A stretch of DNA of 64,000 nt from contig CDROCS010000253.1 of NCBI GenBank assembly GCA_977020255.1, forward strand, positions 3,100,001-3,164,000. Direction: 5' to 3'. Below are positions 16,552 through 63,772 of this stretch, piece after piece. The translations under genes were made by a program, and so were the position numbers. The DNA is from Obrimoposthia wandeli. Taxonomy: Eukaryota. The first letter of the stretch is position 1. Each line of letters begins with the position of its first letter. The notes under the pieces were generated by a model. That model saw nothing but the letters and a program-made list of their open reading frames with translations. It had not been told where the DNA came from and made no database searches.

Positions 16552-16644
16552 GGTTACAGCTTCTATTTTAAAAGAAGCAATGATCACTTTGTTAGTCTTG
16601 TCTGATCGCACCGTTTATGAGAATGAATTAATTAGGGATTTTTT

Positions 16645-17487
16645 ATGTCACTATCAACCATTATCGTTGATGATGAACCGCTGGCTCGTAAAGGATTGGC
16701 AATACGTTTAAAAGCACATGATGAAATTAACGTTATTGAGCAGTGCTGTAACGGTAGAGAAGCATTAGAAGCGATACGAGCTTACCAAGTTGATTTAATG
16801 TTTCTTGATATTCAAATGCCAGGCCTTAATGGCTTTCAGGTATTAGAAAGTATTATCGAGCAAGGGTTAACTATGCCTGTTGTCGTCTTTGTTACTGCCT
16901 TTGATCAATACGCGTTAAAAGCTTTTGAAGTACACGCGCTGGATTATTTATTAAAACCAGCAGATGAAGAAAGACTTGAGCAAACTATTGATAAAATACA
17001 GCATTACTTTCAAAGCAGTGCAGATACGGCACATAAGTCGAAACTAGTTCGTTTAGTGAGTGATGTTACCGGTAATGATTATCAGCAAATATTAACCGAG
17101 TTAGACAATGACCAAGAATTAACTTTATCTAACTATTCTGATGTATTAGCGATTAAAGATGCTGGTGAAGTGAACCGTGTCTCGGTAAAGGATATTCTTT
17201 GGATTGATGCTGCAGGCGATTATATGTGTGTACATACCTTGGAAACTAAACAAAACTTTCCTCAAGAAAATACCTATATTCTTAGAAAAACTATGAAAGA
17301 ATTAGAAGCCTGCTTAGATCCCAAACAATTTATTCGTAACCATAGATCGACCATAGTGAACAAAAATATCATTGATAAATTTTGTAGCCAAGTAAATGGC
17401 GAGTACTTTTTAGTATTGAAAAATGGTAAAGAATTAAAAGTGAGTCGTAGTTATAAGGATAAAGTAAAACAAGCAGTTAATAGCTAA
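16645..17487 (+). CDS. LytTR-family response regulator
   Basis: VDDEPLAR, FLDIQMPG, VTAFD, YLLKP; C-terminal FIRNHRSTIVN. Confidence 0.92.
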   Translation: MSLSTIIVDDEPLARKGLAIRLKAHDEINVIEQCCNGREALEAIRAYQVDLMFLDIQMPGLNGFQVLESIIEQGLTMPVVVFVTAFDQYALKAFEVHALDYLLKPADEERLEQTIDKIQHYFQSSADTAHKSKLVRLVSDVTGNDYQQILTELDNDQELTLSNYSDVLAIKDAGEVNRVSVKDILWIDAAGDYMCVHTLETKQNFPQENTYILRKTMKELEACLDPKQFIRNHRSTIVNKNIIDKFCSQVNGEYFLVLKNGKELKVSRSYKDKVKQAVNS

Positions 17488-41298: not shown

Positions 41299-42828
41299 CT
41301 AGCAGCGCTCAATATCCCATGGTAACAGCGATTCAAGATTGTTTGGCTGCTCAGCGAGATGCTGCAAGCATCTTGATATATAGTCATGCACGACTAAGCC
41401 ATTAGCCTTAGCCGTTTCAACGAGACTATAGAGAATAGCACTCGCATGAGCACCATTACAGGTATTTGAAAACAGCCATGCCTTGCGCCCTATCACAAAC
41501 GGTTTTATTGCCCGCTCGGCTCGATTGTTATCAATAGATAACCTACCATCTTCAAGGTAGCGTTGGAATTTATCAAACTGATTTAGACTGTAACTTATTG
41601 CCTCACCCAGTTTGCTTTTCGGTGGGATTTTATCTTTGTGCTTTATCAGCCAAGCATGTAGTTCTTTTACTATTGGCTTAGCGTGAGACTGTCGGATTTT
41701 GAATCTATCCTCTATCGATTTTTCTTTGAGCTGTTGCTCTAACCCATAGAGCTTGCCGATTAAGTTTAAGGCTACATCAACTTTGCCCGTCCTCGATTTC
41801 GCTTGTATCTTCTTTACATCAACGAATTTACGACGAATATGTGCAAGACAGGCGACTAATTTAGCTTGCGTTAGACCATAAGCTTGATAGCCATCAACAT
41901 GCATATAACCTTGGTAGCCATCAAGAAAATCAATCGCACATTGTGCTGCGCGACTGTTGTGATAATCGTATAAAACGATATTAGTTTTTTCACTGGCGCT
42001 ATCACTACCGCAGCAATATACCCACATATAGCTAGTCGCTTTCTCAGCCTTGATAACTTTTAAGGGGGTTTCATCCGCATGAATGGCAGGCTCTGCGAGC
42101 AATACTTCTTTTAAGCGCATATACAGTGGCTCAAGTAATTGAGCACTGCGCAACATCCAACTCGACATCGTTTGACGACTCAATTCAAGTCCAATATCAC
42201 TAAACATCGTTTCTTGACGGTTTAATGGTAAGCCAAATTGATATTTACACGAGATGATTTGGCTGAGTAAGCTGGAAGTTGCAATACTTTTGGGTATTGG
42301 CGTTGCTGGCATCAAGGCGGTTTTCACCACACTTTCAATCCCGTTACGCTCACATTGACGACATGTATATTTGGGCCGAATGGTTTTAATGACGTTGATA
42401 TGAGCAGGGACAAATTCTAGCGCTTCGCTGCTACTTTCACCCATTTTGTGCAACGGGTTTTGGCAGCAATCACAGACTTTATCTTCCTCATCAATATCTA
42501 CCACGACTTCTTTACGCGGCAGCGCTTGAGGTAAAGGCTTACGTTTTGGCTTAGCTTTCGTTGACGTCTCAATATTTGAATCGCCCAGAAGCTTTTTGTC
42601 GTGTTCATCAAGCACTGATTCTGCTTCATTGAATACTTCATCAGCACCAGGCATTTCCTCTGATTTTTTACCGTATTCATTGGCAAGCTTGAGATTATAG
42701 CGCTCAAGCAAGGCTTGATAAGCGAGATCTTTTTCTGCTAACGCTTCATCCATACGTTGCTGCAACTCAAGCAACATTTGCTTAAGTTGTTCAGGGTCAT
42801 TGGGTAAGGCGTTCGTATTGAATTTCAT
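41299..42828 (-). CDS. tnpC: IS66 DDE transposase
   Basis: Leucine zipper, CDCC/CRQC, HADETP, VDGYQAY, DNNRAERAIKP. Confidence 0.96.
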   Translation of the reverse strand: MKFNTNALPNDPEQLKQMLLELQQRMDEALAEKDLAYQALLERYNLKLANEYGKKSEEMPGADEVFNEAESVLDEHDKKLLGDSNIETSTKAKPKRKPLPQALPRKEVVVDIDEEDKVCDCCQNPLHKMGESSSEALEFVPAHINVIKTIRPKYTCRQCERNGIESVVKTALMPATPIPKSIATSSLLSQIISCKYQFGLPLNRQETMFSDIGLELSRQTMSSWMLRSAQLLEPLYMRLKEVLLAEPAIHADETPLKVIKAEKATSYMWVYCCGSDSASEKTNIVLYDYHNSRAAQCAIDFLDGYQGYMHVDGYQAYGLTQAKLVACLAHIRRKFVDVKKIQAKSRTGKVDVALNLIGKLYGLEQQLKEKSIEDRFKIRQSHAKPIVKELHAWLIKHKDKIPPKSKLGEAISYSLNQFDKFQRYLEDGRLSIDNNRAERAIKPFVIGRKAWLFSNTCNGAHASAILYSLVETAKANGLVVHDYISRCLQHLAEQPNNLESLLPWDIERC

Positions 42829-42933
42829 CCGCTGATTTTAACAAAGTATTCAACCAAATACGGCTTGTAACCGAAATGACGACAAGCGTTTGTGTCAATG
42901 ATCGTTGACTGTGAAAAACTCAATACTCGGCAA

Positions 42934-43281
42934 TTAGATCATCGATTGATAATGTAATTCTTGATGACCAAGGACATCATATCCACAGAGTAACCAATCA
43001 AGTTGCTCAGCCGTTAATGTAAATTCATGCGCGTTGAGCTTGCTAGGCCATTTGAATCTTTGTTTTTCTAAGCGTTTTTGCCAAAGCGTAAAACCTGTTT
43101 TATCCCAGTACAGTATTTTCAATTTATCTTTCGCTTTATTGCAAAAAACGAATAACGCTCCCGTATAAGCATCACGGTTTAACTCATCTTCAACTAGTGC
43201 GGCAAGTCCATTTATTGCCTTGCGAAAGTCGACAAAATCTCGATGTAGGAAAACCGCTGAAGGCTCAACAAACATCTTCAT
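42934..43281 (-). CDS. tnpB: IS66 accessory protein
   Basis: VDFRKAINGL, LFVFCN, LKILYWD..GF. Confidence 0.95.
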   Translation of the reverse strand: MKMFVEPSAVFLHRDFVDFRKAINGLAALVEDELNRDAYTGALFVFCNKAKDKLKILYWDKTGFTLWQKRLEKQRFKWPSKLNAHEFTLTAEQLDWLLCGYDVLGHQELHYQSMI

Positions 43282-43577
43282 ACAATAAGCTCGCGTAACA
43301 ATTGACTGAGGTAAGTAACAGGGGTTGATGCAGGTAAACTGACGTTGGCATTGCCTAATGTTATCGTTATGGCTGCACGCTTTTCAACGAACTCCACTTG
43401 ATGTGTTATTTTGGCGTGAACAAAGTTGTCTGACGACAAACCGAGTTTATTTCTAAAGGCATAAAAGCTAGAAGTTGCTAATTTCTGCTGCTGACAATAA
43501 TCAATAATGGTTAAGCCGCTGGCTTGTTGATCTTCAATGATGGTTTGCCATTGCTCTTGGCTACGTGTGATTCCCAT
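43278..43577 (-). CDS. tnpA: IS66 accessory protein (HTH)
   Basis: W..II..Q..SGLTI..YC; ATGA overlap with tnpB. Confidence 0.9.
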   Translation of the reverse strand: MGITRSQEQWQTIIEDQQASGLTIIDYCQQQKLATSSFYAFRNKLGLSSDNFVHAKITHQVEFVEKRAAITITLGNANVSLPASTPVTYLSQLLRELIV

Positions 43578-44178
43578 GGTTATCTCCTAAATTAAGTGAG
43601 GAAATAAGGTACCTGAGATCAATAGCTAACGTCAGGTGCCGTTAGCTATACGCTTACATACAAGCTATCTCTGTGTCTCATAGCAGCTCTAACTTTCTTT
43701 AAAATAAGCCTCGCTGTTCGCCAATTGACTTCTATTAACTTACTTAGTCTCAGGGCTGATATGCTCCCTTTATCCGAGCCAATAAAATAAATAGCCCAAA
43801 ACCACTGGATTAAGGTAATACGACTACCATGAAAAAGCGTACCTGCTGTAACTGATGTTTGTTTTTTACATTGTGTACATTCGTATAAATGACGACGTCT
43901 AATTTCATAGCTATGGTCATTACCACAGCGAGGGCAAATAAAGCCGTTTTGCCACTTCATCAGTTTCAAATACTCTAAACAATCACCTTCGGTACTAAAC
44001 TGTTGTTGCCAAGTTAAAAAGCTTGCTTCTGGCATGTTCATGATAATGTCTACCTATACAGCGTGTTTATATGTACAGTTTAGTTCAGTCCTGAGTTATC
44101 TGCATAGGCATGTTATAAATTGCATTAATGTTGTAGCTGTTATCAAATCAATGCCTAACAAAGCATTGGTTTCCCAGT

Positions 44179-44797
44179 ATGAGCACTACTTTTTTAAAAC
44201 ATTTTGAATCAATAACTGATCCACGAATTGAGCGTTGTAAAAAACATAACTTACTCGATATCCTTTTACTGGCTATCAGTGCCGTATTATCTGGCGCACA
44301 AGGTTGGGAAGATATTGAGGACTTTGGTCACTTGAAGCTTGATTGGCTGAGAAAACATCGCGATTTTGAGGCGGGTATCCCCAAGCACGATACGATTGCC
44401 AGAGTTATCTGTCGCTTAAAGGCAGACGAGATAGAGCATGCCTTTCAGTCATGGATATCTTCTCTTGTCAAAGTCACAGGATGCGATGTCATTGCGATTG
44501 ATGGCAAAACAGCTAGACGCTCTTTTACGACGAAAGATAGAAAGAATGCACTTCATACAGTAAGTGCTTGGAGTTGCCAACATCAATTAGTTTTAGGGCA
44601 AATGGCAGTCAGCAAAAAAAGTAATGAAATCACTGCTATTCCCGAGTTATTGAGCATGCTAGATATTGAAAATAGCGATGGCGCTATTTAAGCAAGATGA
44701 AAAAAAGTCAGTAAGTATAGCGAGGAAAAAGAAGATGGCAGGGTTAGACGATGAATATCGGTCAACCTTGTTAGAGTCAGGGATTAAAATGCGCTAG
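44179..44797 (+). pseudogene. ISAs1 transposase with large internal deletion
   Basis: DPR..RCKKH.L.DILL, IAIDGKT, SNEITAIPELL, then an out-of-frame C-terminal tail RKKKMAGLDDEYRSTLL. Confidence 0.88.
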
Positions 44798-46123: not shown

Positions 46124-47032
46124 CTATTCTTGACATATTTCAATAGATACATGTGAGAGCTGTGGCAAGATCCCCTTTAAAATACTTTCATATTCGTCTG
46201 AATTTAGTGGCTCAGTTGATGTTACTTTAAGAATTGCCGCTTGGTGAGCTGTGGCAATTTTCCATACATGAATATCGTTAATCACTGTATTTCTTTTACT
46301 TAAGGCATCTGAAATTTTATCCATGGTTGGTTGTTTTATCGACTTATCGAGAAGCACTTCACTTGATTCCTTAATTAACCCATAAGACCAACGTAAGATC
46401 ACTATGGCACCCACAATCCCCATTAATGGGTCCATCCAGAGTAAACCAATGTATTTTCCTACCAGTAAAGCAACAATAGCTAATAAGGACGTTAAGGTAT
46501 CCGCTAATACGTGAAAATAGGCTGCCTTCATATTATGGTCGTGATCATGGTGGTGGTGCTCTCCATGATGGTGATGATGATCATCATGAAGGATAAAAAC
46601 AGAGGCAACATTAACGACTAAACCTATAATCGCAACAATAATTGCTTCGTTGAAATGAATGGATTGTGGCTCGACTAATCGTAGAACAGATTCTATTATC
46701 ATCATTAATGCGACTATCGCTAATGCAATAGCACTGGCAAAACCACCTAAAGAACTTACCTTCCCTGTTCCAAAGCTAAAGTCTTTATTGTTCGCGTGCT
46801 TTTTAGCATAAGAGTAGGCAAATAGTGCAATAAGAAATGCGGCAGAGTGAGTTCCCATATGCCAACCGTCAGCAAGAAGAGCCATAGAGCCTGACCAGGT
46901 GCCAGCGGTAATTTCAAGTACCATAATGACAGTAGTTAACCAAAAAACACTTTTTACTTTGTTTTCATGGAGCTTACTGTCTACGCCAAAATCATGAGAA
47001 TGTTCCCATTGAATACTAGTATCGTTTTTCAT
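46124..47032 (-). CDS. dmeF: CDF-family Co/Ni efflux transporter with His-rich loop
   Basis: ALLADGWHMGTH, FSFGTGK, HDDHHHHHGEHHHHDHDHN, HVLAD. Confidence 0.88.
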   Translation of the reverse strand: MKNDTSIQWEHSHDFGVDSKLHENKVKSVFWLTTVIMVLEITAGTWSGSMALLADGWHMGTHSAAFLIALFAYSYAKKHANNKDFSFGTGKVSSLGGFASAIALAIVALMMIIESVLRLVEPQSIHFNEAIIVAIIGLVVNVASVFILHDDHHHHHGEHHHHDHDHNMKAAYFHVLADTLTSLLAIVALLVGKYIGLLWMDPLMGIVGAIVILRWSYGLIKESSEVLLDKSIKQPTMDKISDALSKRNTVINDIHVWKIATAHQAAILKVTSTEPLNSDEYESILKGILPQLSHVSIEICQE

Positions 47033-47092
47033 TAAACATCCTAAAATATAGCTTCATGCTACTTATGAATAGCATCTATTTACACTTTGAAA

Positions 47093-47111
47093 TATACTAT
47101 ACCCTAGTATA
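47093..47111. promoter_or_regulatory. RcnR/CsoR-type operator between the divergent dmeF and repressor genes
   Basis: TATACT-ATACCCT-AGTATA = TACT-N7-AGTA, the spacing of the RcnR operator. Confidence 0.7.
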
Positions 47112-47135
47112 CTACTTATCAAGTGAAGGAAATTT

Positions 47136-47411
47136 ATGTCACATACCATCGCAGGTAAAAAAAAGCTCCTCAGTCGTGTTAGACGAATAAAAGGTCAATC
47201 ACTCGCCTTAGAGACTGCTTTAGAGGGAGAGCCAAATTGTATGGCTTTTTTACAACAGGTAGCTGCGATTAAAGGTGCGGTTAATGGGCTGATGAAGGAG
47301 GTATTAGAAGCTCATTTGAGAGAGCATTTAGGTGTAGAAGATTTGACAAAAGAGCAACGACTAGAAGAAGTCGAAGAAGTTATTTCTATTCTTAAAAGCT
47401 ACCTAAAATAG
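47136..47411 (+). CDS. RcnR/CsoR/FrmR-family metal-sensing repressor (DmeR-like)
   Basis: MSH N-terminus, RVRRIKGQ, C..FLQQVAA..GA, H.REH. Confidence 0.9.
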   Translation: MSHTIAGKKKLLSRVRRIKGQSLALETALEGEPNCMAFLQQVAAIKGAVNGLMKEVLEAHLREHLGVEDLTKEQRLEEVEEVISILKSYLK

Positions 47412-47430: not shown

Positions 47431-47459
47431 CTAAAAACCGATTGCCTCTCGGTTTTTAG
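47431..47459. promoter_or_regulatory. Palindrome AAAAACCGA-nnGCCnn-TCGGTTTTT, copy 1 (terminator or operator)
   Basis: 11-bp arms; a second copy lies at 48934-48958. Confidence 0.55.
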
Positions 47460-47501
47460 TGTGACAATATCACAATACTTAAATAGGGTAGTGAAAAGTC
47501 T

Positions 47502-47891
47502 ATGCAACTCGGTGAACTAGAAAAACAAGTATTGGAATACCTTTGGAAGGCAAAGCCTGCTGATGCTAAGCAGGTACATAGCTATTTCGAAAAAAATCGA
47601 GGCGGCTCTCTTAATACTATTCAAAGCACGTTAGAACGCTTATTTAAAAAAGACCTGTTAAGTAGGGTAAAGAACGGCCACGCATATCAATATTTTCCTA
47701 AAGTTGCTCGCCAAGAATTGATAGGCCAACTAATCAAAAATGTTACTCATGATTTTGTTGTTGAAGATGAAAACAGCGTTGTCGCGGCTTTTTCTTCTAT
47801 TTCATCTGATCTCGATGAGGATCAGTTAGATAAACTGGAAGCTATGATTGAGCAACAGCGCCAAAAATTACAAGCTAAGACTGAAAGATGA
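47502..47891 (+). CDS. BlaI/MecI/CopY-family repressor
   Basis: LGELE..VLEYLW, NTIQSTLERLFKK.LL.R...G.AY.Y. Confidence 0.92.
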   Translation: MQLGELEKQVLEYLWKAKPADAKQVHSYFEKNRGGSLNTIQSTLERLFKKDLLSRVKNGHAYQYFPKVARQELIGQLIKNVTHDFVVEDENSVVAAFSSISSDLDEDQLDKLEAMIEQQRQKLQAKTER

Positions 47892-48856
47892 TTTATGGTC
47901 AATGGGCGTTAGCATTTAATCTACTTACGATTGCCGTATTAGCCTTTATCATTGCCAATGTTTTTGTTTCGATTGTTATTTGCTCTGTAAAAAATAACAT
48001 TCAACGTTATACGGTATCTACTCGTAAATCGTTACTCTGGTTATCTGTGCTCTTACCTTGGATTATTGCCCTATCTACAAGCCTGTTATTTGGACCTTTT
48101 TTCCAATCAGGCACTACTTTTATCTGGTTAACAGAATTAACGCATTGGCATCATCCCGATATTTATTATTTTCTAAGCTGGCATAGTATTAGTTTGATTG
48201 TTTTTTTCGGTTTCAGTTTCACTATTGCTGTTCGAAGCCTAGTTGTCGCTTACAAAAATCACTATCAGATAATTTTGTTGCGCACTTTAGCGACAAAGAA
48301 AAGTGAGAACGTTTTTATAATAGATTCATCGATCCCGACAGCATTCACAGGTGGATTAATTAAACCATCGTGTTTTATATCTACAGGCTTGATGGAGCAA
48401 TTAGATGCAGATGACATTGAAATAATCATTCAACATGAACTTGCTCACTTACACTATGCTGACCCGCTAAAAAAGTGGGTGTTTTCATTATTGTCTTCTT
48501 ATTTTTCACCTAATGTTAAGAAAATATTGAAATCGATGATGGCAATTACCATGGAGCAAGCGGCTGATTCTTTCTTCGTAAAAACTCAACAACAGGCGCA
48601 CAATGTTGCTAGTACGTTAGTGAGATTTACTAAGTTAGCGGCTAAATATTCCATACATGAACAGTTCAAAAGTGAATTACTCGTTCACTTTTGTCGCCAA
48701 TCCATTGAACAAAGAGTATTAGAGTTGCTCAATGATACTCAACTCAAAGCTTTTCCAATGAAAGTGGTTTTACTCACAATAATACTATTAGCCGTCATAT
48801 CAATGACATCAGTAGATAGCCTCCATCACGCTATTGAAACGCTTTTCGATCATTAA
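47888..48856 (+). CDS. M56 (BlaR1-like) membrane zinc protease lacking the penicillin-binding sensor domain
   Basis: AFTGGL..P, HELAH (HEXXH), EQAAD; ATGA-coupled to the repressor; 322 aa. Confidence 0.88.
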   Translation: MIYGQWALAFNLLTIAVLAFIIANVFVSIVICSVKNNIQRYTVSTRKSLLWLSVLLPWIIALSTSLLFGPFFQSGTTFIWLTELTHWHHPDIYYFLSWHSISLIVFFGFSFTIAVRSLVVAYKNHYQIILLRTLATKKSENVFIIDSSIPTAFTGGLIKPSCFISTGLMEQLDADDIEIIIQHELAHLHYADPLKKWVFSLLSSYFSPNVKKILKSMMAITMEQAADSFFVKTQQQAHNVASTLVRFTKLAAKYSIHEQFKSELLVHFCRQSIEQRVLELLNDTQLKAFPMKVVLLTIILLAVISMTSVDSLHHAIETLFDH

Positions 48857-48902
48857 AGCATCATTAAAATAATAATTTAAGGCTTACTCTAAGGTAATAA
48901 TA

Positions 48903-50315
48903 ATGAAACTATTTACTCAATCATTTACAAATAAAAAACCGACCGCCAATCGGTTTTTATCAAGGCGTTATTTAAAGTTTAGCTTAAAATTTAGCGCTGC
49001 TGTGCTGATGATCACTTCAACCATCTCAGGTTACGCTTACTCAGAAGAAAGCGCCCTGAAATCGGTTGACTTATCTACGGCAATATCTCAAACAATGAGT
49101 ATGCACCCAGAGCTAAAAGTATTTGCTAATCAAGCTGATATTTATAAGGGGTATGCACAACAAGTTGGTATTCAGGTTAGACCAGAAATTGGACTTACCA
49201 TCGAGGATGCACTGGGTACGGGTGATCATAGTGGCTTTAAAAGTGCTCAATCCACACTATCGATCTCATGGGTTTTAGATAACGATCTAGTAAAAAACAG
49301 AGTGGAAAATGCTAAGATTCAGGGAGCAACCGTTGCATTCGCACGAGAAATTAAGGCACTAGATTTAGCTGCACAAACAGCAAAATATTTTATCCAAGTA
49401 CTAGTCAATGAAGAGCGACTAAAACTGTCAAAAATGAGCTTAAAGCAAGCGGTTAAGTCATTTGAAGCAGTCACTAAACGTGTAAATGCAGGAAAGTCTT
49501 CTTTAGTTGATAAACTAAAATCACAAGCTGAAGTCGCTAAACGAGAATTAGTTGTTGAAGATTTAACCCATGAAGTAGATGCCAGTAAATATCAGTTATT
49601 GGCCCAGTGGCAAGGACAGGGGCAAAGCGAGCAACATAAAGAAACTAACATCATTGGCTCATTATTATCGTTACCCCAGTTACCTTTAAGTAATAGCAGC
49701 GATGTTGATTCATTATTTACTCATCTAAAACAAGTGCCTTCGGTCAGTCTTTTCGCTACAAAACAGCGAATTGCTCAGTCTGAGATTGAACTTGCTCGTA
49801 TTGAAACTAAACCCCTATGGAAATTTACAACGGGATTAAGACGTTACGAAACAACCGATGATTTTGGTTTAGTCGCTGGAATTTCAATACCTTTTGGTGA
49901 TAGCAATCAAAATCAAGGGAAAATAAATGCGCTACGTGCTTCCCAAAGCGAATTAGAAACAGCGTCACAAGCACTCGTTCATCAATTGAATACACAGCTA
50001 TATGTGCTTATTGAACAAATGAAACACAGCCAACATGTCATTGATGCTATGACTGAAAACCTTATACCTGTGCTTGAACACGCTTTTGTTGAGGCTGAAA
50101 AAGCTTACAAGATTGGCCGATATAGCTATACCGAGTGGACGAATACTCAACAAGAATTATTAGATGCGCAGTCAGACTTGATTGCTGCTTATCAAAATGC
50201 CCATTTAAACAATATTGAAATAGAGCGATTAACAGGTACGTCCCTATTTGCCATTAATAAAAACGCTAATGCATCTTTGAACGCGCATTCTATTGAAAAA
50301 AATAACGAGAAATAA
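48903..50315 (+). CDS. czcC: Outer-membrane efflux protein, CzcC-like
   Basis: TolC-family repeats; first gene of the RND triplet. Confidence 0.82.
   Translation: MKLFTQSFTNKKPTANRFLSRRYLKFSLKFSAAVLMITSTISGYAYSEESALKSVDLSTAISQTMSMHPELKVFANQADIYKGYAQQVGIQVRPEIGLTIEDALGTGDHSGFKSAQSTLSISWVLDNDLVKNRVENAKIQGATVAFAREIKALDLAAQTAKYFIQVLVNEERLKLSKMSLKQAVKSFEAVTKRVNAGKSSLVDKLKSQAEVAKRELVVEDLTHEVDASKYQLLAQWQGQGQSEQHKETNIIGSLLSLPQLPLSNSSDVDSLFTHLKQVPSVSLFATKQRIAQSEIELARIETKPLWKFTTGLRRYETTDDFGLVAGISIPFGDSNQNQGKINALRASQSELETASQALVHQLNTQLYVLIEQMKHSQHVIDAMTENLIPVLEHAFVEAEKAYKIGRYSYTEWTNTQQELLDAQSDLIAAYQNAHLNNIEIERLTGTSLFAINKNANASLNAHSIEKNNEK
48934..48958. promoter_or_regulatory. Palindrome AAAAACCGA-nnGCCnn-TCGGTTTTT, copy 2, inside the czcC 5' coding region
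   Basis: Same 9-bp arms and central GCC as copy 1. Confidence 0.5.
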
Positions 50316-50317
50316 TC

Positions 50318-51553
50318 ATGAAATCAACATTTAAAATATTAACACTAATAAGCACATTGTGCTTTGTTAGCTTGAGTACAAGTTTCTCTAGCTTTGCCGT
50401 TTCAGAGCAAAAGGTCGAAGAAGCCGAGCCAGAGAAAGGGCCAAATCGGGGACGCATGTTGAAAAAAGATAATTTTGCCATTGAACTATCCATTTTTGAA
50501 ACGGGCGTCCCACCTGAGTTTCGTGTGTGGGCAACTGAGGATGGAAAAGCTATTGACCCAGCGAAAGTAGAGCTTAACGTGAAATTGACCCGACTAGGTG
50601 ATGGTGTCGATGACATCAATTTTTTTCAAGAAGGCCAGTATCTTCGTGGTGATATGGTTATCTACGAACCTCACTCATTTATTGTCTCTTTAACCGCTAA
50701 ATATCAGGGAAAAACTTACAGTTGGCAATATGACAATTTTGAAGGTCGAACAAGTATTGATGAGAAAATTGCAGAGGCAATGAAAATTAGTACTGAAGTT
50801 GTCGGGCCATCAACATTCCATGAAAGCATTGAAGTGTTTGGAAAGTTAACGTTACCAGCCGATGCTACCAGTAATGTTTATGCGCGATTCGATGGCTTGG
50901 TTAAAAAAGTTCACGTCAAACTAGGTGATGCAATTAAAAAAGGTCAATTGTTACTCACACTGGAAAGTAATGAAAGTTTGCAATCTTATCAGGTGACATC
51001 AGCTCAAAAAGGCATTGTCAGTGCGGTTAACGTGACTTCGGGTGAGCAATCTAAAGGCCGAATATTACTTGCGGTGACTAATGATGAAACCTTAGTTGCT
51101 GAGCTAGCCGTTTTTCCTTTGGATTTAGCCAAAGTTAATATTGGCGCAAAAACAACGCTTAACATTAATGGTGTTGAAGAACAGTACACAACTAGAATTG
51201 ATAGCCGAGTATTAAAAGTTAGGAATGATCAGGCGAAGCTATTTCGTGTCTTAGTAAACAATAGTGATTCCTTATTATCTGAAGGCTCTTTTGTGACGGC
51301 AAAGATTGAAATTGGCTCATTTGACGTAGGGATGGCGGTAAAGCGTAACGGATTGCAGAGCTTTCGTGATTTTACCGTAGTTTATGCCAAGGTTGGCAAT
51401 GAATATGAAGTAAGAATGCTTGAATTAGGCCGCATAGTGGGTGATGAAATTGAAGTGTTAGGCGGTATATCTGTAGGCACTGAATATGTCACTGAGAATA
51501 GCTATATCCTAAAAGCAGATGTTGAAAAATCTGGCGCATCACACGATCACTAA
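50318..51553 (+). CDS. czcB: RND membrane-fusion protein, CzcB-like
   Basis: Lipoyl-like G..IKKGQ.L, C-terminal KSGASHDH. Confidence 0.85.
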   Translation: MKSTFKILTLISTLCFVSLSTSFSSFAVSEQKVEEAEPEKGPNRGRMLKKDNFAIELSIFETGVPPEFRVWATEDGKAIDPAKVELNVKLTRLGDGVDDINFFQEGQYLRGDMVIYEPHSFIVSLTAKYQGKTYSWQYDNFEGRTSIDEKIAEAMKISTEVVGPSTFHESIEVFGKLTLPADATSNVYARFDGLVKKVHVKLGDAIKKGQLLLTLESNESLQSYQVTSAQKGIVSAVNVTSGEQSKGRILLAVTNDETLVAELAVFPLDLAKVNIGAKTTLNINGVEEQYTTRIDSRVLKVRNDQAKLFRVLVNNSDSLLSEGSFVTAKIEIGSFDVGMAVKRNGLQSFRDFTVVYAKVGNEYEVRMLELGRIVGDEIEVLGGISVGTEYVTENSYILKADVEKSGASHDH

Positions 51554-51611: not shown

Positions 51612-54600
51612 ATGCTCGAATATTTACTCAGATTTTCTATTCGTAGAAACTCAATTATTATGTTGGCGGTACTCGCCTTTGCTGGATTGGGTCTTTGGAA
51701 TTTTACCAAGTTGCCGATTGATGCCGTCCCTGATATCACCAACATTCAGGTAATGATCAACACCGAAGCGGCAGGGTATACGCCGCTTGAAGTAGAACAA
51801 CGGGTTACTTACCCATTAGAGACTGCATTGGCAGGGCTACCAAATTTAGTCAGTACACGCTCTGTTTCACGTTATGGTTTATCGCAAGTCACCGCCATTT
51901 TTAGTGATGATACTGATATTTACTTTGCCAGACAATTAGTGAATGAACGCTTAGTCTCAGCAAAGTCAGATTTACCTTTTGGATTAGAGCCAGAGCTTGG
52001 ACCAATCGCTACGGGGTTAGGTGAAATATTCATGTTTACCGTGAATGCAGAGCCTAATGCCCGTAATGATGAAGGGAAGTTAATAACAGCGACAGATTTA
52101 AGAACGGTTCATGATTGGATTATTCGCCCTCAATTAATGCAAGTGGAAGGTGTGGTTGAAGTTAACCCTATTGGTGGTTTTAAACGTGAAATTCTTGTTG
52201 CCTTTGAGCCTAAAAAGCTACTGGAATTTGGTCTTAATCAGCAAGACATTATTCAAGCAATCGAAAATAATAATGACAATAAAGGTGCTGGGTTTATAGA
52301 AAAAAATGGCGCTCAATGGTTATTACGTATTCCCGGACAGGTAGAAAGTTTAGAGGCTATCGCTAATATTCCTGTTAGGACCACTGAAGGTAGTGTAATT
52401 CGAATTTCTGATGTCGCTAAAGTACAAGAAGGAAAAGAATTAAGAACAGGTGCTGCAACCCAAAATGGTAGAGAAGTTGTGATGAGTACCGTTTTCATGC
52501 TTATTGGTGAAAACAGTCGAAATGTTGCTAAAGCGGTTGGTATAAAGTTAGACGAAGTTAAAGCGAGTTTACCCATCGGTATTACCGTTACCGCTGTGTA
52601 TGACCGCACTACCTTAGTTGAAAAGACACTCGATACAGTAAAAATGAACCTCTTTGAAGGGGCGTTATTGGTTATTGTCGTGTTGTTTTTATTACTAGGT
52701 AATATGAGAGCGGCATTGCTTACTGCTGCGGTTATCCCATTTGCGATGTTAATGACTGTAACGGGCATGGTACAAGTAGGTGTTAGTGCCAATCTGATGA
52801 GTTTAGGGGCGTTAGATTTTGGACTACTCGTTGATGGTGCCATTATCATCGTTGAGAATTGTCTAAGAAAGCTCAGTTCGGCATCGCTCAATGGTCGCAC
52901 CATGCCTGTTAATGAACGATTAGCACTGGTATATGAAGCGACCAAAGAAGTCATCCGTCCAGCATTATTTGGCGTATTTATTATAACTGCCGTATATTTA
53001 CCTATTTTTGCGCTAACGGGTGTCGAAGGGAAAATGTTTCACCCTATGGCAATAACCGTTGTTATAGCCTTATGTTGTGCAATGTTCTTATCAGTAACTT
53101 TTGTTCCGGCAGCTATTGCTATTTTGTTCAAAGGGCCTGTAAAAGAAAAAGAAAATATCATTATAAAATCATCTTTAGCGCTTTATCGTCCTTCTTTAAC
53201 GTTTGCGCTTAAAGTTCGCTGGTTTGTTGTGGTTTTCGCTGTTGGACTTGTCGGCTTAGCTGGATTTTCTGCCAATAAACTCGGTAGCGAATTTGTGCCA
53301 AACCTTGATGAAGGTGATATCGCCATGCATGCCTTGCGTATTCCTGGCACGTCATTATCGCAAGCTGTCGCGTTACAAAAAGTCTTAGAAGAAAAAATCA
53401 ATCAAATGCCAGAGGTTGAACGTGTCTTTGCAAAAATTGGTACAGCCGATGTTGCAACAGATGCCGTACCACCAAGTGTTGCCGATAATTTTATTATCTT
53501 AAAACCTCGTAGCGAATGGCCAAATCCTAACAAACCTAAAACGCAATTTGTAGAAGAATTAGCAGCTGTAGTAGAGCCTATACCGGGTAATCGATATGAA
53601 TTCTTACAACCAATACAAATGCGCTTTAATGAGTTGTTATCAGGGGTTCGTGCAGAGTTGGCTATCAAAGTGTTTGGCGATGATTTCGAGACCTTAAGTG
53701 CGTTAGGAAAGAGCATAAACACAGCTATTATTAATGTTGAGGGAATTGCTGATATTCAAGTAGAGAGAACGACAGGTTTACCTCTAATGACGATTAATCC
53801 AAAACTTGCCCAGCTAGCAAAATATGGAATAAGCGTGAAACAACTACAAGATCAACTTTCCACAGCATTAGGTGGCACCATTGCCGGCAAGTTCTATCAA
53901 GGCGATCAACGTGCCGACATAGTAGTACGTCTTCCAGAAGCGCTAAGAAGCGATGTTGATGCCTTAGCTTACTTACCCATACAGATGTTCGATAACAGTT
54001 ATGTTCCGTTACAGGAGGTAGCTGAATTGGTATTAGTTGAGGGCGCAAACCAAGTCAATAGAGAAAATGGCAAACGTAGAGTGGTTGTTACCGCTAACGT
54101 TCGAGGCAGAGATTTAGGCTCATTTGTTCAGGATATTCAAGCGTCAATTGATGAGTCTGTTGAAATACCTGCGGGTTACTGGATTGAATATGGCGGCACC
54201 TACCAAAAGTTACAATCCGCATCAGAGCGCCTAGCTATCGTGGTTCCTATTACGTTAGTGATGATTATTGGTTTGCTCTTCTTGGCTTTAGGCTCATTTA
54301 AAGATTCTATGATTATTTTCACGGGTGTACCATTAGCCTTAACCGGGGGCATTTTTGCTTTATTGTTGAGAGATATTCCTTTTTCAATATCAGCCGCTGT
54401 TGGTTTTATCGCTTTATCAGGTATCGCTATTTTAAATGGCTTGGTTATGGTCTCGTTTATACGAGAACTTAGGCGAGAAGGCGCTGCGTTAGATACGGCT
54501 ATTATTGAAGGTGCATTGACAAGACTTCGACCTGTGCTAACAACCGCGCTTGTTGCTTCATTAGGTTTTGTGCCTATGGCGCTTAATACAGGCATTGGCT

Positions 54601-54758
54601 CTGAGGTTCAACGCCCACTAGCAACTGTGGTGATCGGAGGGGTTATTTCATCTACCATTTTAACATTGTTTGTTTTACCTGCTTTGTATCGTTTACTACA
54701 CAATAGCAAAAAAACTTTCACTAAAACAACTCACCCAAAGGAAACCGTTAATGTCTAA
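51612..54758 (+). CDS. czcA: HME-RND heavy-metal efflux pump, CzcA-like (divalent)
   Basis: PIDAVPDITN, DFGLLVDGAIIIVEN proton-relay motif, RLRPVL. Confidence 0.92.
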   Translation: MLEYLLRFSIRRNSIIMLAVLAFAGLGLWNFTKLPIDAVPDITNIQVMINTEAAGYTPLEVEQRVTYPLETALAGLPNLVSTRSVSRYGLSQVTAIFSDDTDIYFARQLVNERLVSAKSDLPFGLEPELGPIATGLGEIFMFTVNAEPNARNDEGKLITATDLRTVHDWIIRPQLMQVEGVVEVNPIGGFKREILVAFEPKKLLEFGLNQQDIIQAIENNNDNKGAGFIEKNGAQWLLRIPGQVESLEAIANIPVRTTEGSVIRISDVAKVQEGKELRTGAATQNGREVVMSTVFMLIGENSRNVAKAVGIKLDEVKASLPIGITVTAVYDRTTLVEKTLDTVKMNLFEGALLVIVVLFLLLGNMRAALLTAAVIPFAMLMTVTGMVQVGVSANLMSLGALDFGLLVDGAIIIVENCLRKLSSASLNGRTMPVNERLALVYEATKEVIRPALFGVFIITAVYLPIFALTGVEGKMFHPMAITVVIALCCAMFLSVTFVPAAIAILFKGPVKEKENIIIKSSLALYRPSLTFALKVRWFVVVFAVGLVGLAGFSANKLGSEFVPNLDEGDIAMHALRIPGTSLSQAVALQKVLEEKINQMPEVERVFAKIGTADVATDAVPPSVADNFIILKPRSEWPNPNKPKTQFVEELAAVVEPIPGNRYEFLQPIQMRFNELLSGVRAELAIKVFGDDFETLSALGKSINTAIINVEGIADIQVERTTGLPLMTINPKLAQLAKYGISVKQLQDQLSTALGGTIAGKFYQGDQRADIVVRLPEALRSDVDALAYLPIQMFDNSYVPLQEVAELVLVEGANQVNRENGKRRVVVTANVRGRDLGSFVQDIQASIDESVEIPAGYWIEYGGTYQKLQSASERLAIVVPITLVMIIGLLFLALGSFKDSMIIFTGVPLALTGGIFALLLRDIPFSISAAVGFIALSGIAILNGLVMVSFIRELRREGAALDTAIIEGALTRLRPVLTTALVASLGFVPMALNTGIGSEVQRPLATVVIGGVISSTILTLFVLPALYRLLHNSKKTFTKTTHPKETVNV

Positions 54759-55437
54759 TATTTTGCAGCGATATGGCTTGTTGAGTGTTATTGCTTTACT
54801 TGCCATATGGTTACCTATTGAGGTCTTTGCTCATGGTGTCGATGAAAGCACAAGAGCATTTTTACTACAAAACACTGGCGTACAAATCATCCCATTTTTG
54901 TATATCGGTGCTAAGCATATGGTGACGGGGTACGATCATTTATTGTTCTTAGTGGGTGTACTGTTCTTTTTATATAAAAGTCGTGATGTTTTATTGTATG
55001 TCAGTATGTTTACCCTAGGACACAGCATAACCTTATTGTTTGGCGTGGCGTGCACATTACATGCTTGTCACCGACACACGGTATTGCTATCAGTGGTGTA
55101 TAAGGGCTTTGATAATTTAGGTGGTTTTAATCGACTCTTTGGTAAATCACCCAATGCAAAGCTTGCGGTATTGATTTTTGGTCTGTTTCACGGTTTTGGC
55201 TTAGCAACCAAGTTACAAGAGTTTCAACTTCCTGATGACGGCTTAATTGCCGGGATAATGCCATGCTGGAGCGGCAGGGTCAGTCAGTTTACCGCCTTGG
55301 CCTTTATTCTTTTAGTGATTAATTTTTGGCGTAAACACAGCAGCTTCAATCGATTTGCGACAAACACGAATTGTTTGTTAATGAGTGCAGGATTTATGTT
55401 GGTAGGCTTTCAACTAACAGGTTATTTCATTAACTAA
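54751..55437 (+). pseudogene. HupE/UreJ-family metal permease with two scrambled patches
   Basis: HGVD, GYDHLLF, HSITL, GLFHGFGLA retained; ~55043-55090 and ~55245-55290 do not resemble the family. Frame stays open, so the pseudogene call is uncertain. Confidence 0.65.
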
Positions 55438-55445
55438 ATAGCTAA

Positions 55446-56051
55446 CTTAATCAATTTTACTTAATAAACCTTTACCCTGGTTTTAAGAGAGCCAACAAAG
55501 CAGAAGCTATCACATTAACGAGTGCTGCACTGATCAAATATACGTTATTCAGTTTAGTATTCGCAACCGTGACCCTATTTACAATTATATTACCTGCGGA
55601 ATACAACATCGATCCAACAGGTATCGGGCATAAGCTTGGATTAACCGTCTTTAATGATGTACAAACAGTTAGTGTAAAAACAGAAATGGCAGCCGTACCT
55701 TTATCACAAGAAGTTGCCAAAAATTCAAAAGAGACTGAAGTAGCAATAGAAGTGATCGTTCCTGCGGATCGCGGTGTAGAGTATAAATTTGTTATGGAAC
55801 AATATCAAAAGCTGGAATACGAGTGGATAACCGATAGCACACCACTGTATTTCGATTTACATGGCGAACCAAAAGGCGATACGACGGGATATTTTGAAAG
55901 TTATGTCATCGCAACCGTAAAAGAAATGAAAGGAAGTTTTACCACACCTTTTGCTGGTTCTCATGGCTGGTATTGGAAGAATACAACTGATGCTCCGGTA
56001 ACTGTTCAGTTAATCGTAAAAGGTGAATATACGAAACATGGCCTTAAGTAA
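55446..56051 (+). CDS. Membrane-anchored periplasmic protein; start codon not identifiable
   Basis: ILPAEYNIDPTGIG, YFDLHGE, GSHGWYW. The TM helix LIKYTLFSLVFATV lies in frame upstream of the GTG at 55569 with no ATG. Confidence 0.65.
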   Translation, partial: LNQFYLINLYPGFKRANKAEAITLTSAALIKYTLFSLVFATVTLFTIILPAEYNIDPTGIGHKLGLTVFNDVQTVSVKTEMAAVPLSQEVAKNSKETEVAIEVIVPADRGVEYKFVMEQYQKLEYEWITDSTPLYFDLHGEPKGDTTGYFESYVIATVKEMKGSFTTPFAGSHGWYWKNTTDAPVTVQLIVKGEYTKHGLK

Positions 56052-56304: not shown

Positions 56305-56691
56305 GTGAATTTTAACTTCTCTAAAACATTAATGGTGTTGCTAATATGTATGTCCTTCGTTGGACAGACAATGGCGTCTACTATTATGTCTTATCATATG
56401 ATGAGTATGAAGGGAATGAATGGACAAGAGCAATCACAAAATATGTCAATGATGGATCACAGCCAACACAATATGGCTCCTGAGACTTCTGATGATTCAA
56501 ATACATCAGATGATTGTTGTTCTAAAACATGTAACTGCTTTACTGGTGGTTGCTCAAGTGTTGCTGCGTTCATGAAGGACGCCGCAGATAATTACCCAAT
56601 CGTTGATTTATCATCTAAAATACTTTCCTATTCTAGTTTGGCGCTAAGCCAACAATCTACCTCATTATATCGTCCCCCAATATTAAGCTAA
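56305..56691 (+). CDS. Secreted Met/His/Cys-rich metal-binding protein, CopL/DUF2946-like
   Basis: Signal peptide, MSMMDHSQHNM, DCCSKTCNC..GGC, terminal YRPPI. Confidence 0.7.
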   Translation: MNFNFSKTLMVLLICMSFVGQTMASTIMSYHMMSMKGMNGQEQSQNMSMMDHSQHNMAPETSDDSNTSDDCCSKTCNCFTGGCSSVAAFMKDAADNYPIVDLSSKILSYSSLALSQQSTSLYRPPILS

Positions 56692-56843
56692 ATACAGAAT
56701 AAATGTGTCCAAAATTTGGTTCATTTAAATAACTATCTTTCTGTATTAGGCTTTTTTGATCTCGTTTTTTAGAAATACTTTCTAACTTCATCAAAATAAC
56801 CTAATTAATTAAAAAATTAATTGATATCCCTATTGGGGGGGTT

Positions 56844-57368
56844 ATGTTTTCAAATAAACTTACTTTAAAAGTTCTCGCTACCTTTGTATTAGTAATCACA
56901 CTTGCAAGTTGCTCTGACGACGAAGCAATACCTAATTCTACTCAATCACAAAGTGCGAAATCACAATCTATTGTCCTAGATGTATACAAGAGTCCTACAT
57001 GTGGCTGCTGTAAAAAGTGGATAAATCACATCAACAAAAATGGATTTGAATCGAAGGTCCACAACAGAAGCAATATTTTTGTGATTAAAGATAAAAAAGG
57101 AGTTGAACCACGTTATCGCTCCTGTCATACCGCTATTTCAAAAGATGGTTATGCCTTTGAAGGCCATGTACCTGCGAAATTCATCCAACAATTCATGCAA
57201 GAAACTCACGCTAAGAACGTTATCGGTTTGTCCGTTCCAGGGATGCCTGTAGGGTCACCGGGAATGGAAGTTAAGGACAAATTTCAGCCATACAAGGTTT
57301 TACTTTTGAAGTCAGATGGCACGTATGAAATTTATGCCAATATTCATTCCTATGAGGAGCAGTTCTAA
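56844..57368 (+). CDS. copG: DUF411/CopG-family periplasmic copper lipoprotein
   Basis: Lipobox LASC, YKSPTCGCC..W, SCHT, EGHVP, PGMP.GSPGM. Confidence 0.85.
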   Translation: MFSNKLTLKVLATFVLVITLASCSDDEAIPNSTQSQSAKSQSIVLDVYKSPTCGCCKKWINHINKNGFESKVHNRSNIFVIKDKKGVEPRYRSCHTAISKDGYAFEGHVPAKFIQQFMQETHAKNVIGLSVPGMPVGSPGMEVKDKFQPYKVLLLKSDGTYEIYANIHSYEEQF

Positions 57369-58825
57369 TGAATAAGCTAAATGATAATAGCAAGCTTCGC
57401 ATGAAATGCGGTGCAGGAATTATAGCTTTAACTATTTTTTCTATTAGTGCCGCTGAGTTTCAAGTGACTAAAGCTAACCCACCTTTATCTTTTGAAATGG
57501 CAGTCAAAGCAGCTCAAAAAAATGATCCTTGGTTAACGGGGAATGTTCATAAACAACGATCCATCGAATTGATGAGTACTGCGGTAAATACGTTGCCTGA
57601 TCCAAAAATGTCAATTGGTCTAGCAAACATGCCAACAGATGGCTTTGATTTTGGCCAAGAAGGGATGACACAGGCTAAAGTGGGCATTTCACAAATGTTC
57701 CCTCGTGGAGATACCTTAGCTATTAAAAGCCAACAACTCAAAATTCAAAGTGAAGCGTTTCCCTACCAAAGGAAAGACAGGGAATCAAAAGTAGCAGTTA
57801 CCGTAGGAAGTTTATGGCTGGATGCCTATCGAGTTCAGCAAAGTATCGCATTAATTGAAAAAAACAGATCACTGTTTGAACAGTTAGCCGATGTAGCTGA
57901 AGCAAGTTATTCATCAGCTTTAGGTAAAACCCGTCAGCAAGATATTGTGCGAGCACAACTAGAGTTAACACGTTTAGAAGATAGGTTAGACAAATTAGCA
58001 CAACAGAAAAATCGTTATGAAGGAATGCTTTCACAATGGCTAACCAAGTTTTCTACAGGAAATAGCGCGATAGTTGAAGCGTCATTAGTCAGTGATTTTT
58101 CTTTACATAATATAGTCCTTAGTCAGCAACTACCTCAAATAGACCTACTTAATCGTGATTTAGTCTATAAAGAAAGTTGGCTTAAGGCAGGGGTGCTTCT
58201 CCGGTATTTCTCAAGTCATCCTTCTGTTGTCGCGGTAGAAAAGAAAGTCAATGCGACTAAAACAGGGATTAAGTTAGCGAAGCAAAAATACAAACCTGAA
58301 TGGGGAGTAAACGCAAGCTATGGCTATCGTGCTGATGATCCGATGGGGAGAAGTCGAGCTGATTTATTTTCTGTTGGTGTGACGTTTGATTTACCACTTT
58401 TTACTGAAAACCGACAAGATAAAGAAGTTCAATCAGCTATTTCTAAAACTGAGGCGGTGAAAACTGAAAAGTTACTCTTACTTAGGCAATTGCTCGGCTC
58501 TTATTCGAGTGCAAAAGGAAGGTTGCTTCGTTTAAAAGACAGACAAAACCTGTACAAATCAAAGTTATTACCTCAAATACATGACCAAGCAGAAGCCTCT
58601 TTGACCGCTTATACCAATGATGATGGCGATTTTTCAGAAGTTGTTCGTTCACGTATTGCTGTGTTAAATGCCGAAATAGACGATCTAACACTAAACGTAG
58701 AAGAGCAGAAAATACTGCTAGAACTTAATTACCTCTTTATAGGTAGTATCAATTCTACAATCTCACAAAACAAAATAAATTTAGCAAATAGCAATCAATT
58801 TACTGCTATTTCAGGAGAAAAATAA
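57368..58825 (+). CDS. Outer-membrane efflux protein, CusC-like
   Basis: TolC family; LPDP, F.QEGMTQ...ISQMFP; coupled to copG and cusB. Confidence 0.85.
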   Translation: MNKLNDNSKLRMKCGAGIIALTIFSISAAEFQVTKANPPLSFEMAVKAAQKNDPWLTGNVHKQRSIELMSTAVNTLPDPKMSIGLANMPTDGFDFGQEGMTQAKVGISQMFPRGDTLAIKSQQLKIQSEAFPYQRKDRESKVAVTVGSLWLDAYRVQQSIALIEKNRSLFEQLADVAEASYSSALGKTRQQDIVRAQLELTRLEDRLDKLAQQKNRYEGMLSQWLTKFSTGNSAIVEASLVSDFSLHNIVLSQQLPQIDLLNRDLVYKESWLKAGVLLRYFSSHPSVVAVEKKVNATKTGIKLAKQKYKPEWGVNASYGYRADDPMGRSRADLFSVGVTFDLPLFTENRQDKEVQSAISKTEAVKTEKLLLLRQLLGSYSSAKGRLLRLKDRQNLYKSKLLPQIHDQAEASLTAYTNDDGDFSEVVRSRIAVLNAEIDDLTLNVEEQKILLELNYLFIGSINSTISQNKINLANSNQFTAISGEK

Positions 58826-60627: not shown

Positions 60628-60644
60628 TTAGGAGCTAAATACGT

Positions 60645-63600: not shown

Positions 63601-63772
63601 CTTATTACCTATTTTGTACGGAACAGGCACTGGCTCTGAGGTCATGAGTCGTATTGCTGCGCCAATGGTTGGCGGCATGTTAAGTGCGGTCATTTTAACC
63701 TTACTTGTGTTACCGGCATTATTTTATTTATGGCGTTCGTCATCGATAAAAAGTACAGCGTCAAAAGCATAG
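60645..63772 (+). pseudogene. cusA: CusA-like Cu/Ag RND pump, broken by a scrambled ~150-bp patch (62920-63073)
   Basis: [39 protein letters not shown]; the frame resumes at 63074 (NGWAFVDIDG...) and continues into ORF 63143-63772. Confidence 0.85.

Follow-up and report, generated by a model that had tools for sequence, protein, structure and literature searches.

We analyzed a 64,000-nt stretch of DNA (the window) from an assembly deposited for Obrimoposthia wandeli (GenBank GCA_977020255.1, contig CDROCS010000253.1, positions 3,100,001 to 3,164,000 of the forward strand), with attention to a repressor gene and a membrane protease gene (47502 to 48856) that stand at the head of a heavy-metal efflux operon. 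The best protein matches of the locus were to Colwellia sp. 12G3 and C. hornerae, and its source genome is evidently Colwellia. The pair and the genes that follow it are given below; TM stands for transmembrane, HME for heavy-metal efflux, and RND for resistance-nodulation-division.

47502..47891, + strand: winged-helix repressor of the BlaI/MecI/CopY family, 129 aa, no Cys (Pfam PF03965)
47888..48856, + strand: sensor-less M56/M48 membrane zinc protease, 322 aa, four predicted TM helices
48903..50315, + strand: outer-membrane factor (OMF) of the CzcC/TolC type (OEP, PF02321); best NCBIfam model IhpA, below its cut-off
50318..51553, + strand: periplasmic adaptor of the CzcB type (HlyD_D23, HlyD_3); IhpB and CzcB/NccB subfamily models below cut-off
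51612..54758, + strand: HME-RND pump of the CzcA type (TIGR00914), with DFGLLVDGAIIIVEN in TM4
54751..55437, + strand: HupE/UreJ_2 membrane protein (PF13795, 123 bits), its start overlapping the pump stop codon
55569..56051, + strand: conserved protein U160, 160 aa, with one N-terminal TM helix, co-conserved with hupE

Repressor, protease and efflux operon

Open reading frames (ORFs) and Pfam matches bear out an earlier sequence-only reading of this DNA, which had described a BlaI-type repressor ATGA-coupled to a 322-aa M56 protease; the repressor gene (47502-47891) runs into the protease gene (47888-48856), and at every locus compared the pair is translationally coupled or separated by a few bases. 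That reading also placed czcC 46 nt past the protease gene, and the OMF gene does begin there (48903), followed by the adaptor and a CusA/CzcA-family pump. Its statement that the window lacks a CzcRS pair holds as well. Among all window ORFs of at least 100 aa, the sole two-component system pairs a LytS-type kinase and a LytTR response regulator (15466-17487); it lies 30 kb off, outside the metal island bounded by insertion sequences (IS), and is unrelated to it; no OmpR-family regulator with a HisKA kinase, as in CzcRS, was found beside the pump among island ORFs of that size.

Penicillinase_R (PF03965) matches the repressor at 90.8 bits against a cut-off of 22.6, over profile positions 1-115 of 115, and the protein aligns end to end with the structures of MecI (residues 8-120), BlaI, and Mycobacterium tuberculosis BlaI (residues 6-117). 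Both hallmarks of the BlaI/MecI/CopY family, a winged-helix domain and a C-terminal dimerization helix region, are present. The score with the CopY equivalog TIGR02698 is 48.5, below its cut-off of 121.95. Apart from the lack of Cys in the window protein, neither Cys nor His is conserved among 39 unique orthologues. Because no such ligand is conserved and the CopY score falls far under its cut-off, the repressor is, on sequence grounds, not a direct metal sensor of the CopY type.

The protease carries Peptidase_M56 (PF05569; 40.6 bits, cut-off 31), as do 48 of 48 protease homologues, and its Pfam Peptidase_M48 match is nearly as good. Its chain stops 13 residues past the last TM helix and has no SxxK penicillin-binding domain, so that, as the sequence-only reading claimed, the beta-lactam sensor of BlaR1 is missing. 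An AlphaFold2 (AF2) model (predicted local distance difference test score, pLDDT, 86.8; predicted template modeling score 0.86) shows long helices at residues 5-34, 43-68, 98-134, and 291-319. In this prediction the M56 architecture is complete: of the four TM helices, TM3 and TM4 flank a protease domain that lies on the cytoplasmic side, and the fold resembles that of BlaR1. The motifs on which cleavage would depend are these:

48434..48448, + strand: catalytic HELAH (residues 183-187; H183, E184, H187), invariant, opposite BlaR1 H201-E202-xx-H205
48554..48568, + strand: EQAAD (E223-D227), an ExxxD motif whose Glu is the third zinc ligand; E223, A226, and D227 invariant
47784..47798, + strand: presumed scissile region of the repressor, codons A95-A96-F97-S98-S99, cut at A96|F97 by alignment to MecI/BlaI

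In a 38-sequence alignment, the invariant residues of the catalytic and cytoplasmic parts are H183, E184, H187, D192, E223, A226, D227, F268, and R276. A family profile set against BlaR1 aligns F268 with F284, the P1' residue of BlaR1 autocleavage, and places R276 beside R293/R294. On the repressor side, AAFSS is invariant in the 39 unique orthologues; the MecI segment NSLVL-NF aligns with NSVVA-AF, which puts F97 opposite MecI F102. BlaR1 cuts BlaI at N101|F102 (PMC9834060); the candidate site here has Ala at P1, not Asn as in BlaI. By analogy, the protease probably inactivates the repressor by a cut at AAF|SS.

The M56 protein could instead be an HtpX-type housekeeping or quality-control protease that is merely co-transcribed, with the repressor freed by a direct ligand or by another protease. 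The close M48 match in Pfam points this way, as do the NCBIfam scores, of which the best are to HtpX models, all far under cut-off; blaR1_generic gave 21.1 against a cut-off of 400. This alternative is, however, very improbable. The five top Foldseek matches of the model are Staphylococcus aureus BlaR1 structures (8exs/8exq first, probability 1.00), not HtpX or Ste24; the genes adjoin everywhere, in an order and coupling shared with BlaI/BlaR1 and with the cyanobacterial pair PetR/PetP discussed below; the repressor keeps the P1' Phe of the BlaI cut site and the protease its autocleavage Phe; and the repressor has no conserved ligand residues. The M56 gene of Shewanella sp. OPT22 (locus L035, 10001-10957) is interrupted by a stop at codon 51; the other parts of that cassette and its boxes are intact.

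The pump scores 1428.7 bits with TIGR00914 (CusA/CzcA family; cut-off 701.45), and its nearest solved structures are ZneA and CusA. Its TM4 motif, DFG-x3-DGA-x3-VEN, is invariant in all orthologues, and we take it to be the mark of divalent-cation HME pumps in Nies's classification.

A pattern and tblastn scan restricted to one genome per species gave 44 loci. The order blaI, M56, OMF, adaptor, RND, hupE, U160 is kept in about 35 of the 44, in some 12 genera (among them Colwellia, Cognaticolwellia, Litorilituus, Thalassotalea, Thalassomonas, Pseudoalteromonas, Psychrobium, Alteromonas, Paraneptunicella, Shewanella, and Methylophaga), and is retained where M56 identity falls to 27-37%. While hupE is conserved after the pump in most loci, three loci (L017, L034, and L040) have no pump, and the pair is directly followed by hupE and U160.

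The shared 21-bp box

A 21-bp palindrome with the consensus AAACCGATTGnCAATCGGTTT, or AAACC(G/T)A(T/C)-N5-(A/G)T(C/A)GGTTT, occurs at two places in the cassette:

47435..47455, no strand assigned: operator box 1, AAACCGATTGCCTCTCGGTTT, around the -35-like TTGCCT (47442-47447) of the blaI promoter
47462..47470, + strand: candidate extended -10, TG-a-CAATAT, 17 nt past TTGCCT, as read from the sequence
48936..48956, no strand assigned: operator box 2, AAACCGACCGCCAATCGGTTT, beginning 33 nt past the initial base of the czcC start codon

Searching 850 kb of loci with up to two substitutions returned 126 boxes, 123 of which lie upstream of blaI or just downstream of M56, regions that make up 5.7% of the sequence; in the window, two boxes were observed against 0.02 expected. 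Given this excess and the repetition of the gene order in about 40 independent genomes, the arrangement of pair and pump is far beyond chance.

The placement of the box is equally regular. Upstream of blaI it is found in essentially all loci and encloses the -35 hexamer. In a clade with two upstream boxes, box 1 holds TTGAC(G/A), with TACATT 17 nt later, and in many genera a second upstream box lies 33-36 bp downstream of the first, over the start region. Past M56, loci have either one box or two, and the final box is always 24-33 nt inside the first coding region, at the same position and in the same reading frame in czcC or hupE, whichever comes first. At pump-less loci, the box has shifted, with its position, onto hupE. 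Gene starts annotated by NCBI on the ANA-3 plasmid agree with the placement of the downstream box. The extended -10 position is kept in the Colwellia clade and in plasmid copies (TG-n-CACTAT). The only transcription factor that always accompanies the box is the BlaI-like protein.

Could the palindrome be mainly an RNA element, a terminator or attenuator hairpin after rcnR, after M56, and in the czcC leader, with the repressor site elsewhere? Both window boxes form perfect 8-9-bp hairpins between A and T runs and were flagged by a terminator scan, the folding energy of single and downstream boxes is -7 to -8.7 kcal/mol, and one copy lies within a transcribed coding region. The arms, in contrast, are conserved as sequence: the half-site cores are invariant, compensatory changes were not seen, and positions 6/16 and 8/14 are unpaired in 27-32% of 91 unique boxes, so that about 30% are mispaired mid-stem. 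Where upstream boxes are paired, folding reaches just -3.4 to -4.8 kcal/mol, and some 80% of them stay weaker than -6. The center of the box is palindromic too and holds the -35 hexamer, and its core resembles the PetR operator. A mainly RNA-level role is consequently improbable. Since the arms are conserved without compensation, the stems mispair, and the upstream copies fold weakly, the box appears to behave as a protein operator rather than an RNA hairpin, although it may combine the two roles. The repressor very probably binds it and so controls its own promoter and the czc/hupE genes, to judge from the comparisons above.

Some points tell against this operator assignment. An operator within a coding region is unusual; the downstream boxes, which fold at -7 to -8.5 kcal/mol, could act as RNA hairpins too; and the candidate -10, like the promoter to which it belongs, is weak by consensus and is not among the sites listed by the promoter scan. 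Expression data are uninformative here: metatranscriptome contigs are short, come from relatives, and match small shares of the stretch. One 113-nt contig spans the M56 stop to czcC, which is insufficient to show a single transcript.

Other candidate elements were set aside. A TGTGA-N5-TCACA palindrome (47459-47473), considered as an operator, is unconserved even within Colwellia and more likely overlaps the extended -10. A hairpin at 47431-47459, returned by the terminator scan downstream of rcnR, was rejected as an rcnR terminator when comparison across loci showed it to be the conserved box. A box-like match at 21230 has two mismatches, lies within a glucose-6-phosphate dehydrogenase gene, and was taken as chance. 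The interval from the M56 stop to czcC also holds a direct repeat, ATCATTAAA, with an 11-nt period (48849-48868), one copy of which is absent from the metatranscriptome contig of one relative.

Boxes were also seen in altered gene settings. On plasmids (L045, 2198-2548; L046, 8166-8525), a DUF3147 gene is divergent from blaI with the box in between, so DUF3147 may belong to the regulon there. The pump-less locus of C. psychrerythraea (L017, 10963-11408) retains a remnant ORF of the czcC leader with the box, now carrying an in-frame stop. A Methylophaga locus without an OMF gene (L030, 10984-11095) keeps another such leader remnant, an ORF of about 30 codons with the box, before the adaptor gene.

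Histidine clusters and the candidate trigger

Two clusters of potential metal ligands lie outside the catalytic domain of the protease:

48143..48184, + strand: loop motif H86-W-H88-H89...S97-W-H99 (THWHHPD..SWH, residues 85-99) at the junction of TM3 and the loop equivalent to extracellular loop 1 (EL1) of BlaR1, predicted periplasmic
48815..48853, + strand: C-terminal tail D310-xx-H313-H314-xx-E317-x4-H322, then stop (DSLHHAIETLFDH, residues 310-322), predicted periplasmic

These clusters, like HELAH and EQAAD, had been named in the sequence-only reading, and all four are present. In the loop, W87, H88, H89, W98, and H99 are invariant and H86 is found in 37 of 38 sequences; in the tail, D310, H314, E317, and H322 are invariant and H313 is again found in 37 of 38. 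Among these 38 sequences, no Met of the TM2-TM3 loop is invariant. The final His is the last residue of the protein in all but one orthologue examined, plasmid copies included, and the clusters stay conserved down to 27% M56 identity. A lack of conservation of the His clusters or of the czc linkage in homologues had been named beforehand as grounds to refute the proposed switch; both proved to be conserved, and to an uncommon extent.

A charge census put Lys plus Arg at 3.5 for loop 1, 0.4 for the His-bearing loop, and 0.1 for the C-terminal tail. Together with the homology to BlaR1, this argues for a topology in which both His clusters face the periplasm. The family profile sets HWHH against the point at which EL1 ends and helix alpha3 begins. 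In BlaR1, EL1 occupies the sensor active site until a beta-lactam displaces it, whereupon alpha3 moves and the protease becomes active (PMC9834060). The AF2 model draws the tail as a helical continuation of TM4, which would set D310, H313, H314, and E317 on one helix face. H86 and H313 are replaced (by D and L, respectively) in one and the same sequence and in no other, a coupling that is only suggestive of a link between loop and tail.

These features can be assembled into the following scheme. A dimer of the BlaI-family repressor would bind the palindrome at its own -35 and inside the first structural gene, and so keep the operon off. The co-translated M56 protease would span the inner membrane, its HExxH...E domain lying on the cytoplasmic side. 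Divalent metal in the periplasm would be the activating signal, held by H86, H88, H89, and H99 of the TM2-TM3 loop and by D310, H313, H314, E317, and H322 of the 13-residue tail, which would stand in place of the beta-lactam sensor domain. Metal binding would move TM3, as displacement of EL1 does in BlaR1, and the active protease would cut the repressor at AAF|SS, the equivalent of BlaI N101|F102, with loss of the dimer and derepression of the operon. That the trigger is a periplasmic divalent metal bound by loop and tail, a His counterpart of the Met site proposed for PetP, is the likelier account, by a modest measure.

The switch could also be a genuine BlaI/BlaR-type one with another trigger, such as stress on the envelope or membrane, a signal connected with the pump, the pH, or a protein partner (U160 or HupE), with the His clusters serving a structural role or forming a protein or dimer interface. 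Some sensor-less BlaR homologues have signals that are unknown or other than metal, BlaR1 itself is a domain-swapped dimer whose loops are stabilized at the interface (PMC9834060), model confidence in EL1 is low, and U160 and HupE always co-occur with the pair. Nine invariant or near-invariant His, Asp, and Glu residues on the periplasmic face, in HxHH and D-xx-HH-xx-E spacings typical of metal ligands, nevertheless speak against it; all regulated or neighboring genes are moreover metal-related, and PetRP, the closest functional precedent, responds to a metal. We regard a non-metal trigger as unlikely.

Weighing these lines together, we lean toward a PetR/PetP-like, metal-triggered switch that acts by regulated proteolysis, lacks a penicillin-binding sensor, and controls a mobile divalent-metal cassette. 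Several observations pull the other way. Further sensor-less BlaR/BlaI pairs, those of mycobacteria and PvmSR of Pseudomonas aeruginosa, are not known as metal-responsive; the HupE family is known for Ni/Co importers, which is awkward in an operon induced by metal excess; the EL1 region of the model has a pLDDT of just 61-64; and the H86/H313 coupling is known from a single lineage.

As to the metal, the sequence-only reading had the protease and repressor switching on czc in response to Zn, Co, or Cd. The box that the blaI promoter and the czcC start share strengthens this regulatory link; the metal, though, need not come from that set. Pump-less loci in which the pair directly precedes hupE and U160, together with the neighboring dmeF and rcnR genes, make Ni/Co at least as likely as Zn/Cd. 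The HupE relatives and the His-rich chemistry, too, suit Ni/Co no less than Zn/Cd, and the metal of the cassette is probably one of these.

Mobility, surroundings and comparison with known systems

Shewanella, Glaciecola, and Pseudoalteromonas have the cassette on conjugative megaplasmids, as does strain ANA-3 of Shewanella (proteins WP_011711700, WP_011711699, and WP_011711698 to WP_011711694); in a Salmonella enterica from pork, it is carried by an IncC conjugative plasmid. Plasmid cassettes also carry DUF6488. Over the whole cassette (records L046, NZ_CP100354.1 8500-16400, and NZ_CP051530.1), the Salmonella copy is 99.3% identical to that on a Shewanella baltica plasmid from mackerel gut, which indicates recent transfer from Shewanella to Enterobacteriaceae; complete Escherichia coli genomes lack it. 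From these occurrences, the cassette evidently moves among marine bacteria and onto conjugative plasmids together with its own operator DNA.

In the window, an IS66 transposase, its TnpB, and fragments from two further transposases mark the left edge of the metal island (41299-44691); with the plasmid copies, they suggest that the island was acquired by transfer. Divergent dmeF, encoding a cation diffusion facilitator (CDF) family Co/Ni exporter with a long His run, and an rcnR/frmR-like repressor gene adjoin the pair upstream (46124-47411), neighbors that are restricted to the Colwellia clade and the loci L033 and L042. A second, cus-like metal system lies downstream (56305-63772). Its parts are a small secreted protein rich in Met, His, and Cys (56305-56691), an OMF, a protein with DUF411, an adaptor of CusB type to which CusF and HMBD domains are fused (58825-60627), and a pump that resembles CusA. 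The pump gene is in two pieces, 60645-62927 and 63143-63772, with an insert of some 140 nt between them at approximately 62928-63070.

Relative to its counterparts in C. hornerae and Colwellia sp. 12G3, hupE (54751-55437) has deletions of 8, 1, and 3 nt that leave short scrambled stretches with the frame open; decay of the gene, variation between strains, and an assembly error are all conceivable causes. U160 has no relative in Pfam or the PDB; its N-terminal TM helix is encoded ahead of the first ATG, GTG, or TTG (55466-56051, with the GTG at 55569), and the 176-aa ANA-3 homologue, named 'hypothetical protein' by PGAP, has an ATG start.

The copper ligands of PetP have only been guessed. The cassette offers a testable handle on how sensor-less BlaR-type proteases perceive their signal, with nine candidate ligands, a scissile motif, an operator, and pump expression as a read-out, and it is carried by culturable hosts such as Shewanella sp. 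ANA-3. If the proposal is true, HME-RND pumps would have a third kind of regulatory logic in addition to CzcRS and CnrYXH, biosensor design would gain a compact metal-responsive switch, and a self-regulated metal-resistance module that spreads on conjugative plasmids would be explained. The full form of the proposal, for which we see an even chance, is that the 250-residue antibiotic-sensing domain of BlaR1 has been swapped for a minimal periplasmic metal site made of loop and tail, giving the first regulated-proteolysis control of heavy-metal RND efflux, independent of a two-component system or an extracytoplasmic function (ECF) sigma factor, in a self-contained cassette with a 21-bp operator that moved from Shewanella plasmids to a Salmonella IncC plasmid. 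Full-text literature searches found no published link between a BlaI/M56 pair and control of a czc/RND pump; matches in papers on Cupriavidus and Marinomonas had no bearing on it.

In Cupriavidus, the CnrYXH/NccYXH and CzcRS systems use a periplasmic His-rich metal site to signal across the inner membrane and switch on a czc- or cnr-type RND operon. The logic is analogous to that proposed here, but the proteins, an anti-sigma factor with an ECF sigma factor or a histidine kinase with a response regulator, are unrelated, and no genes of these types were found among ORFs of at least 100 aa in the metal island. CopY/TcrY of Firmicutes share the PF03965 repressor family, and CopY responds to metal; CopY, however, does so through its own C-terminal CxCx4CxC site and needs no protease, whereas the repressor here is Cys-free, and the cop box TACAnnTGTA is unlike the 21-bp box.

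S. aureus BlaR1/BlaI and MecR1/MecI (PMC9834060; PDB 8exp-8ext, 1okr, 1sd4) match the present pair in protein families, fold, and HExxH...E, and likewise in the autocleavage-loop Phe, the Phe aligned at P1' of the repressor, and an extracellular loop before alpha3 that here is the proposed signaling element. They differ in having an SxxK penicillin-binding domain and a TACA/TGTA operator; here there is neither, the host is Gram-negative, and the targets are metal transporters. Short M56 proteases without a sensor also accompany BlaI-family repressors in mycobacteria and in PvmSR of P. aeruginosa (bioRxiv 10.64898/2026.08.03.742534). The signals of those pairs are unknown or non-metal, their regulons concern beta-lactamase and cell division, or virulence, and a His-rich loop or tail or a linkage to RND genes is unreported for them. 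Alteromonas and further heterotrophs also have BlaR homologues according to a 2023 survey of marine bacteria, which described their role as still to be elucidated.

The closest precedent, which the sequence-only reading had not named, is PetR/PetP of Synechocystis sp. PCC 6803, a sensor-less BlaI/BlaR1-type pair whose triggering by copper was demonstrated by experiment (Garcia-Canas et al. 2021; bioRxiv 10.1101/2020.07.31.226407; commentary PMC7896320), in which PetP degrades PetR in a copper-dependent manner in vivo and in extracts (bioRxiv 10.1101/2020.07.31.226407). In both systems, the BlaI-like gene runs with its stop into the start of an M48/M56 gene; the encoded protease combines four TM helices and a cytoplasmic HExxH domain but lacks a C-terminal sensor; and the TM2-TM3 loop contains candidate ligands for metal. 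The PetR operator, GAC-N5-GTC, matches the box core GA(C/T)-N5-(G/A)TC. The two part ways in several respects. For PetP, two conserved Met in a 14-residue loop are the proposed copper ligands, whereas the protease here has a loop of about 30 residues with four conserved His, plus the His/Asp/Glu tail. The PetRP regulon consists of the photosynthetic electron carriers petE and petJ, and here it is an efflux pump; petRP mRNA is unchanged by copper, while here the promoter of the repressor itself bears the box; and the hosts are cyanobacteria in the one case and heterotrophic gammaproteobacteria and plasmids in the other. With no invariant Met in its loop, and with PetP compared by its published description, the protease looks like a different branch that works alike rather than a PetP orthologue. 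Given this precedent, the cassette switch is best placed as a variant of the PetRP-like kind and not as a new category.

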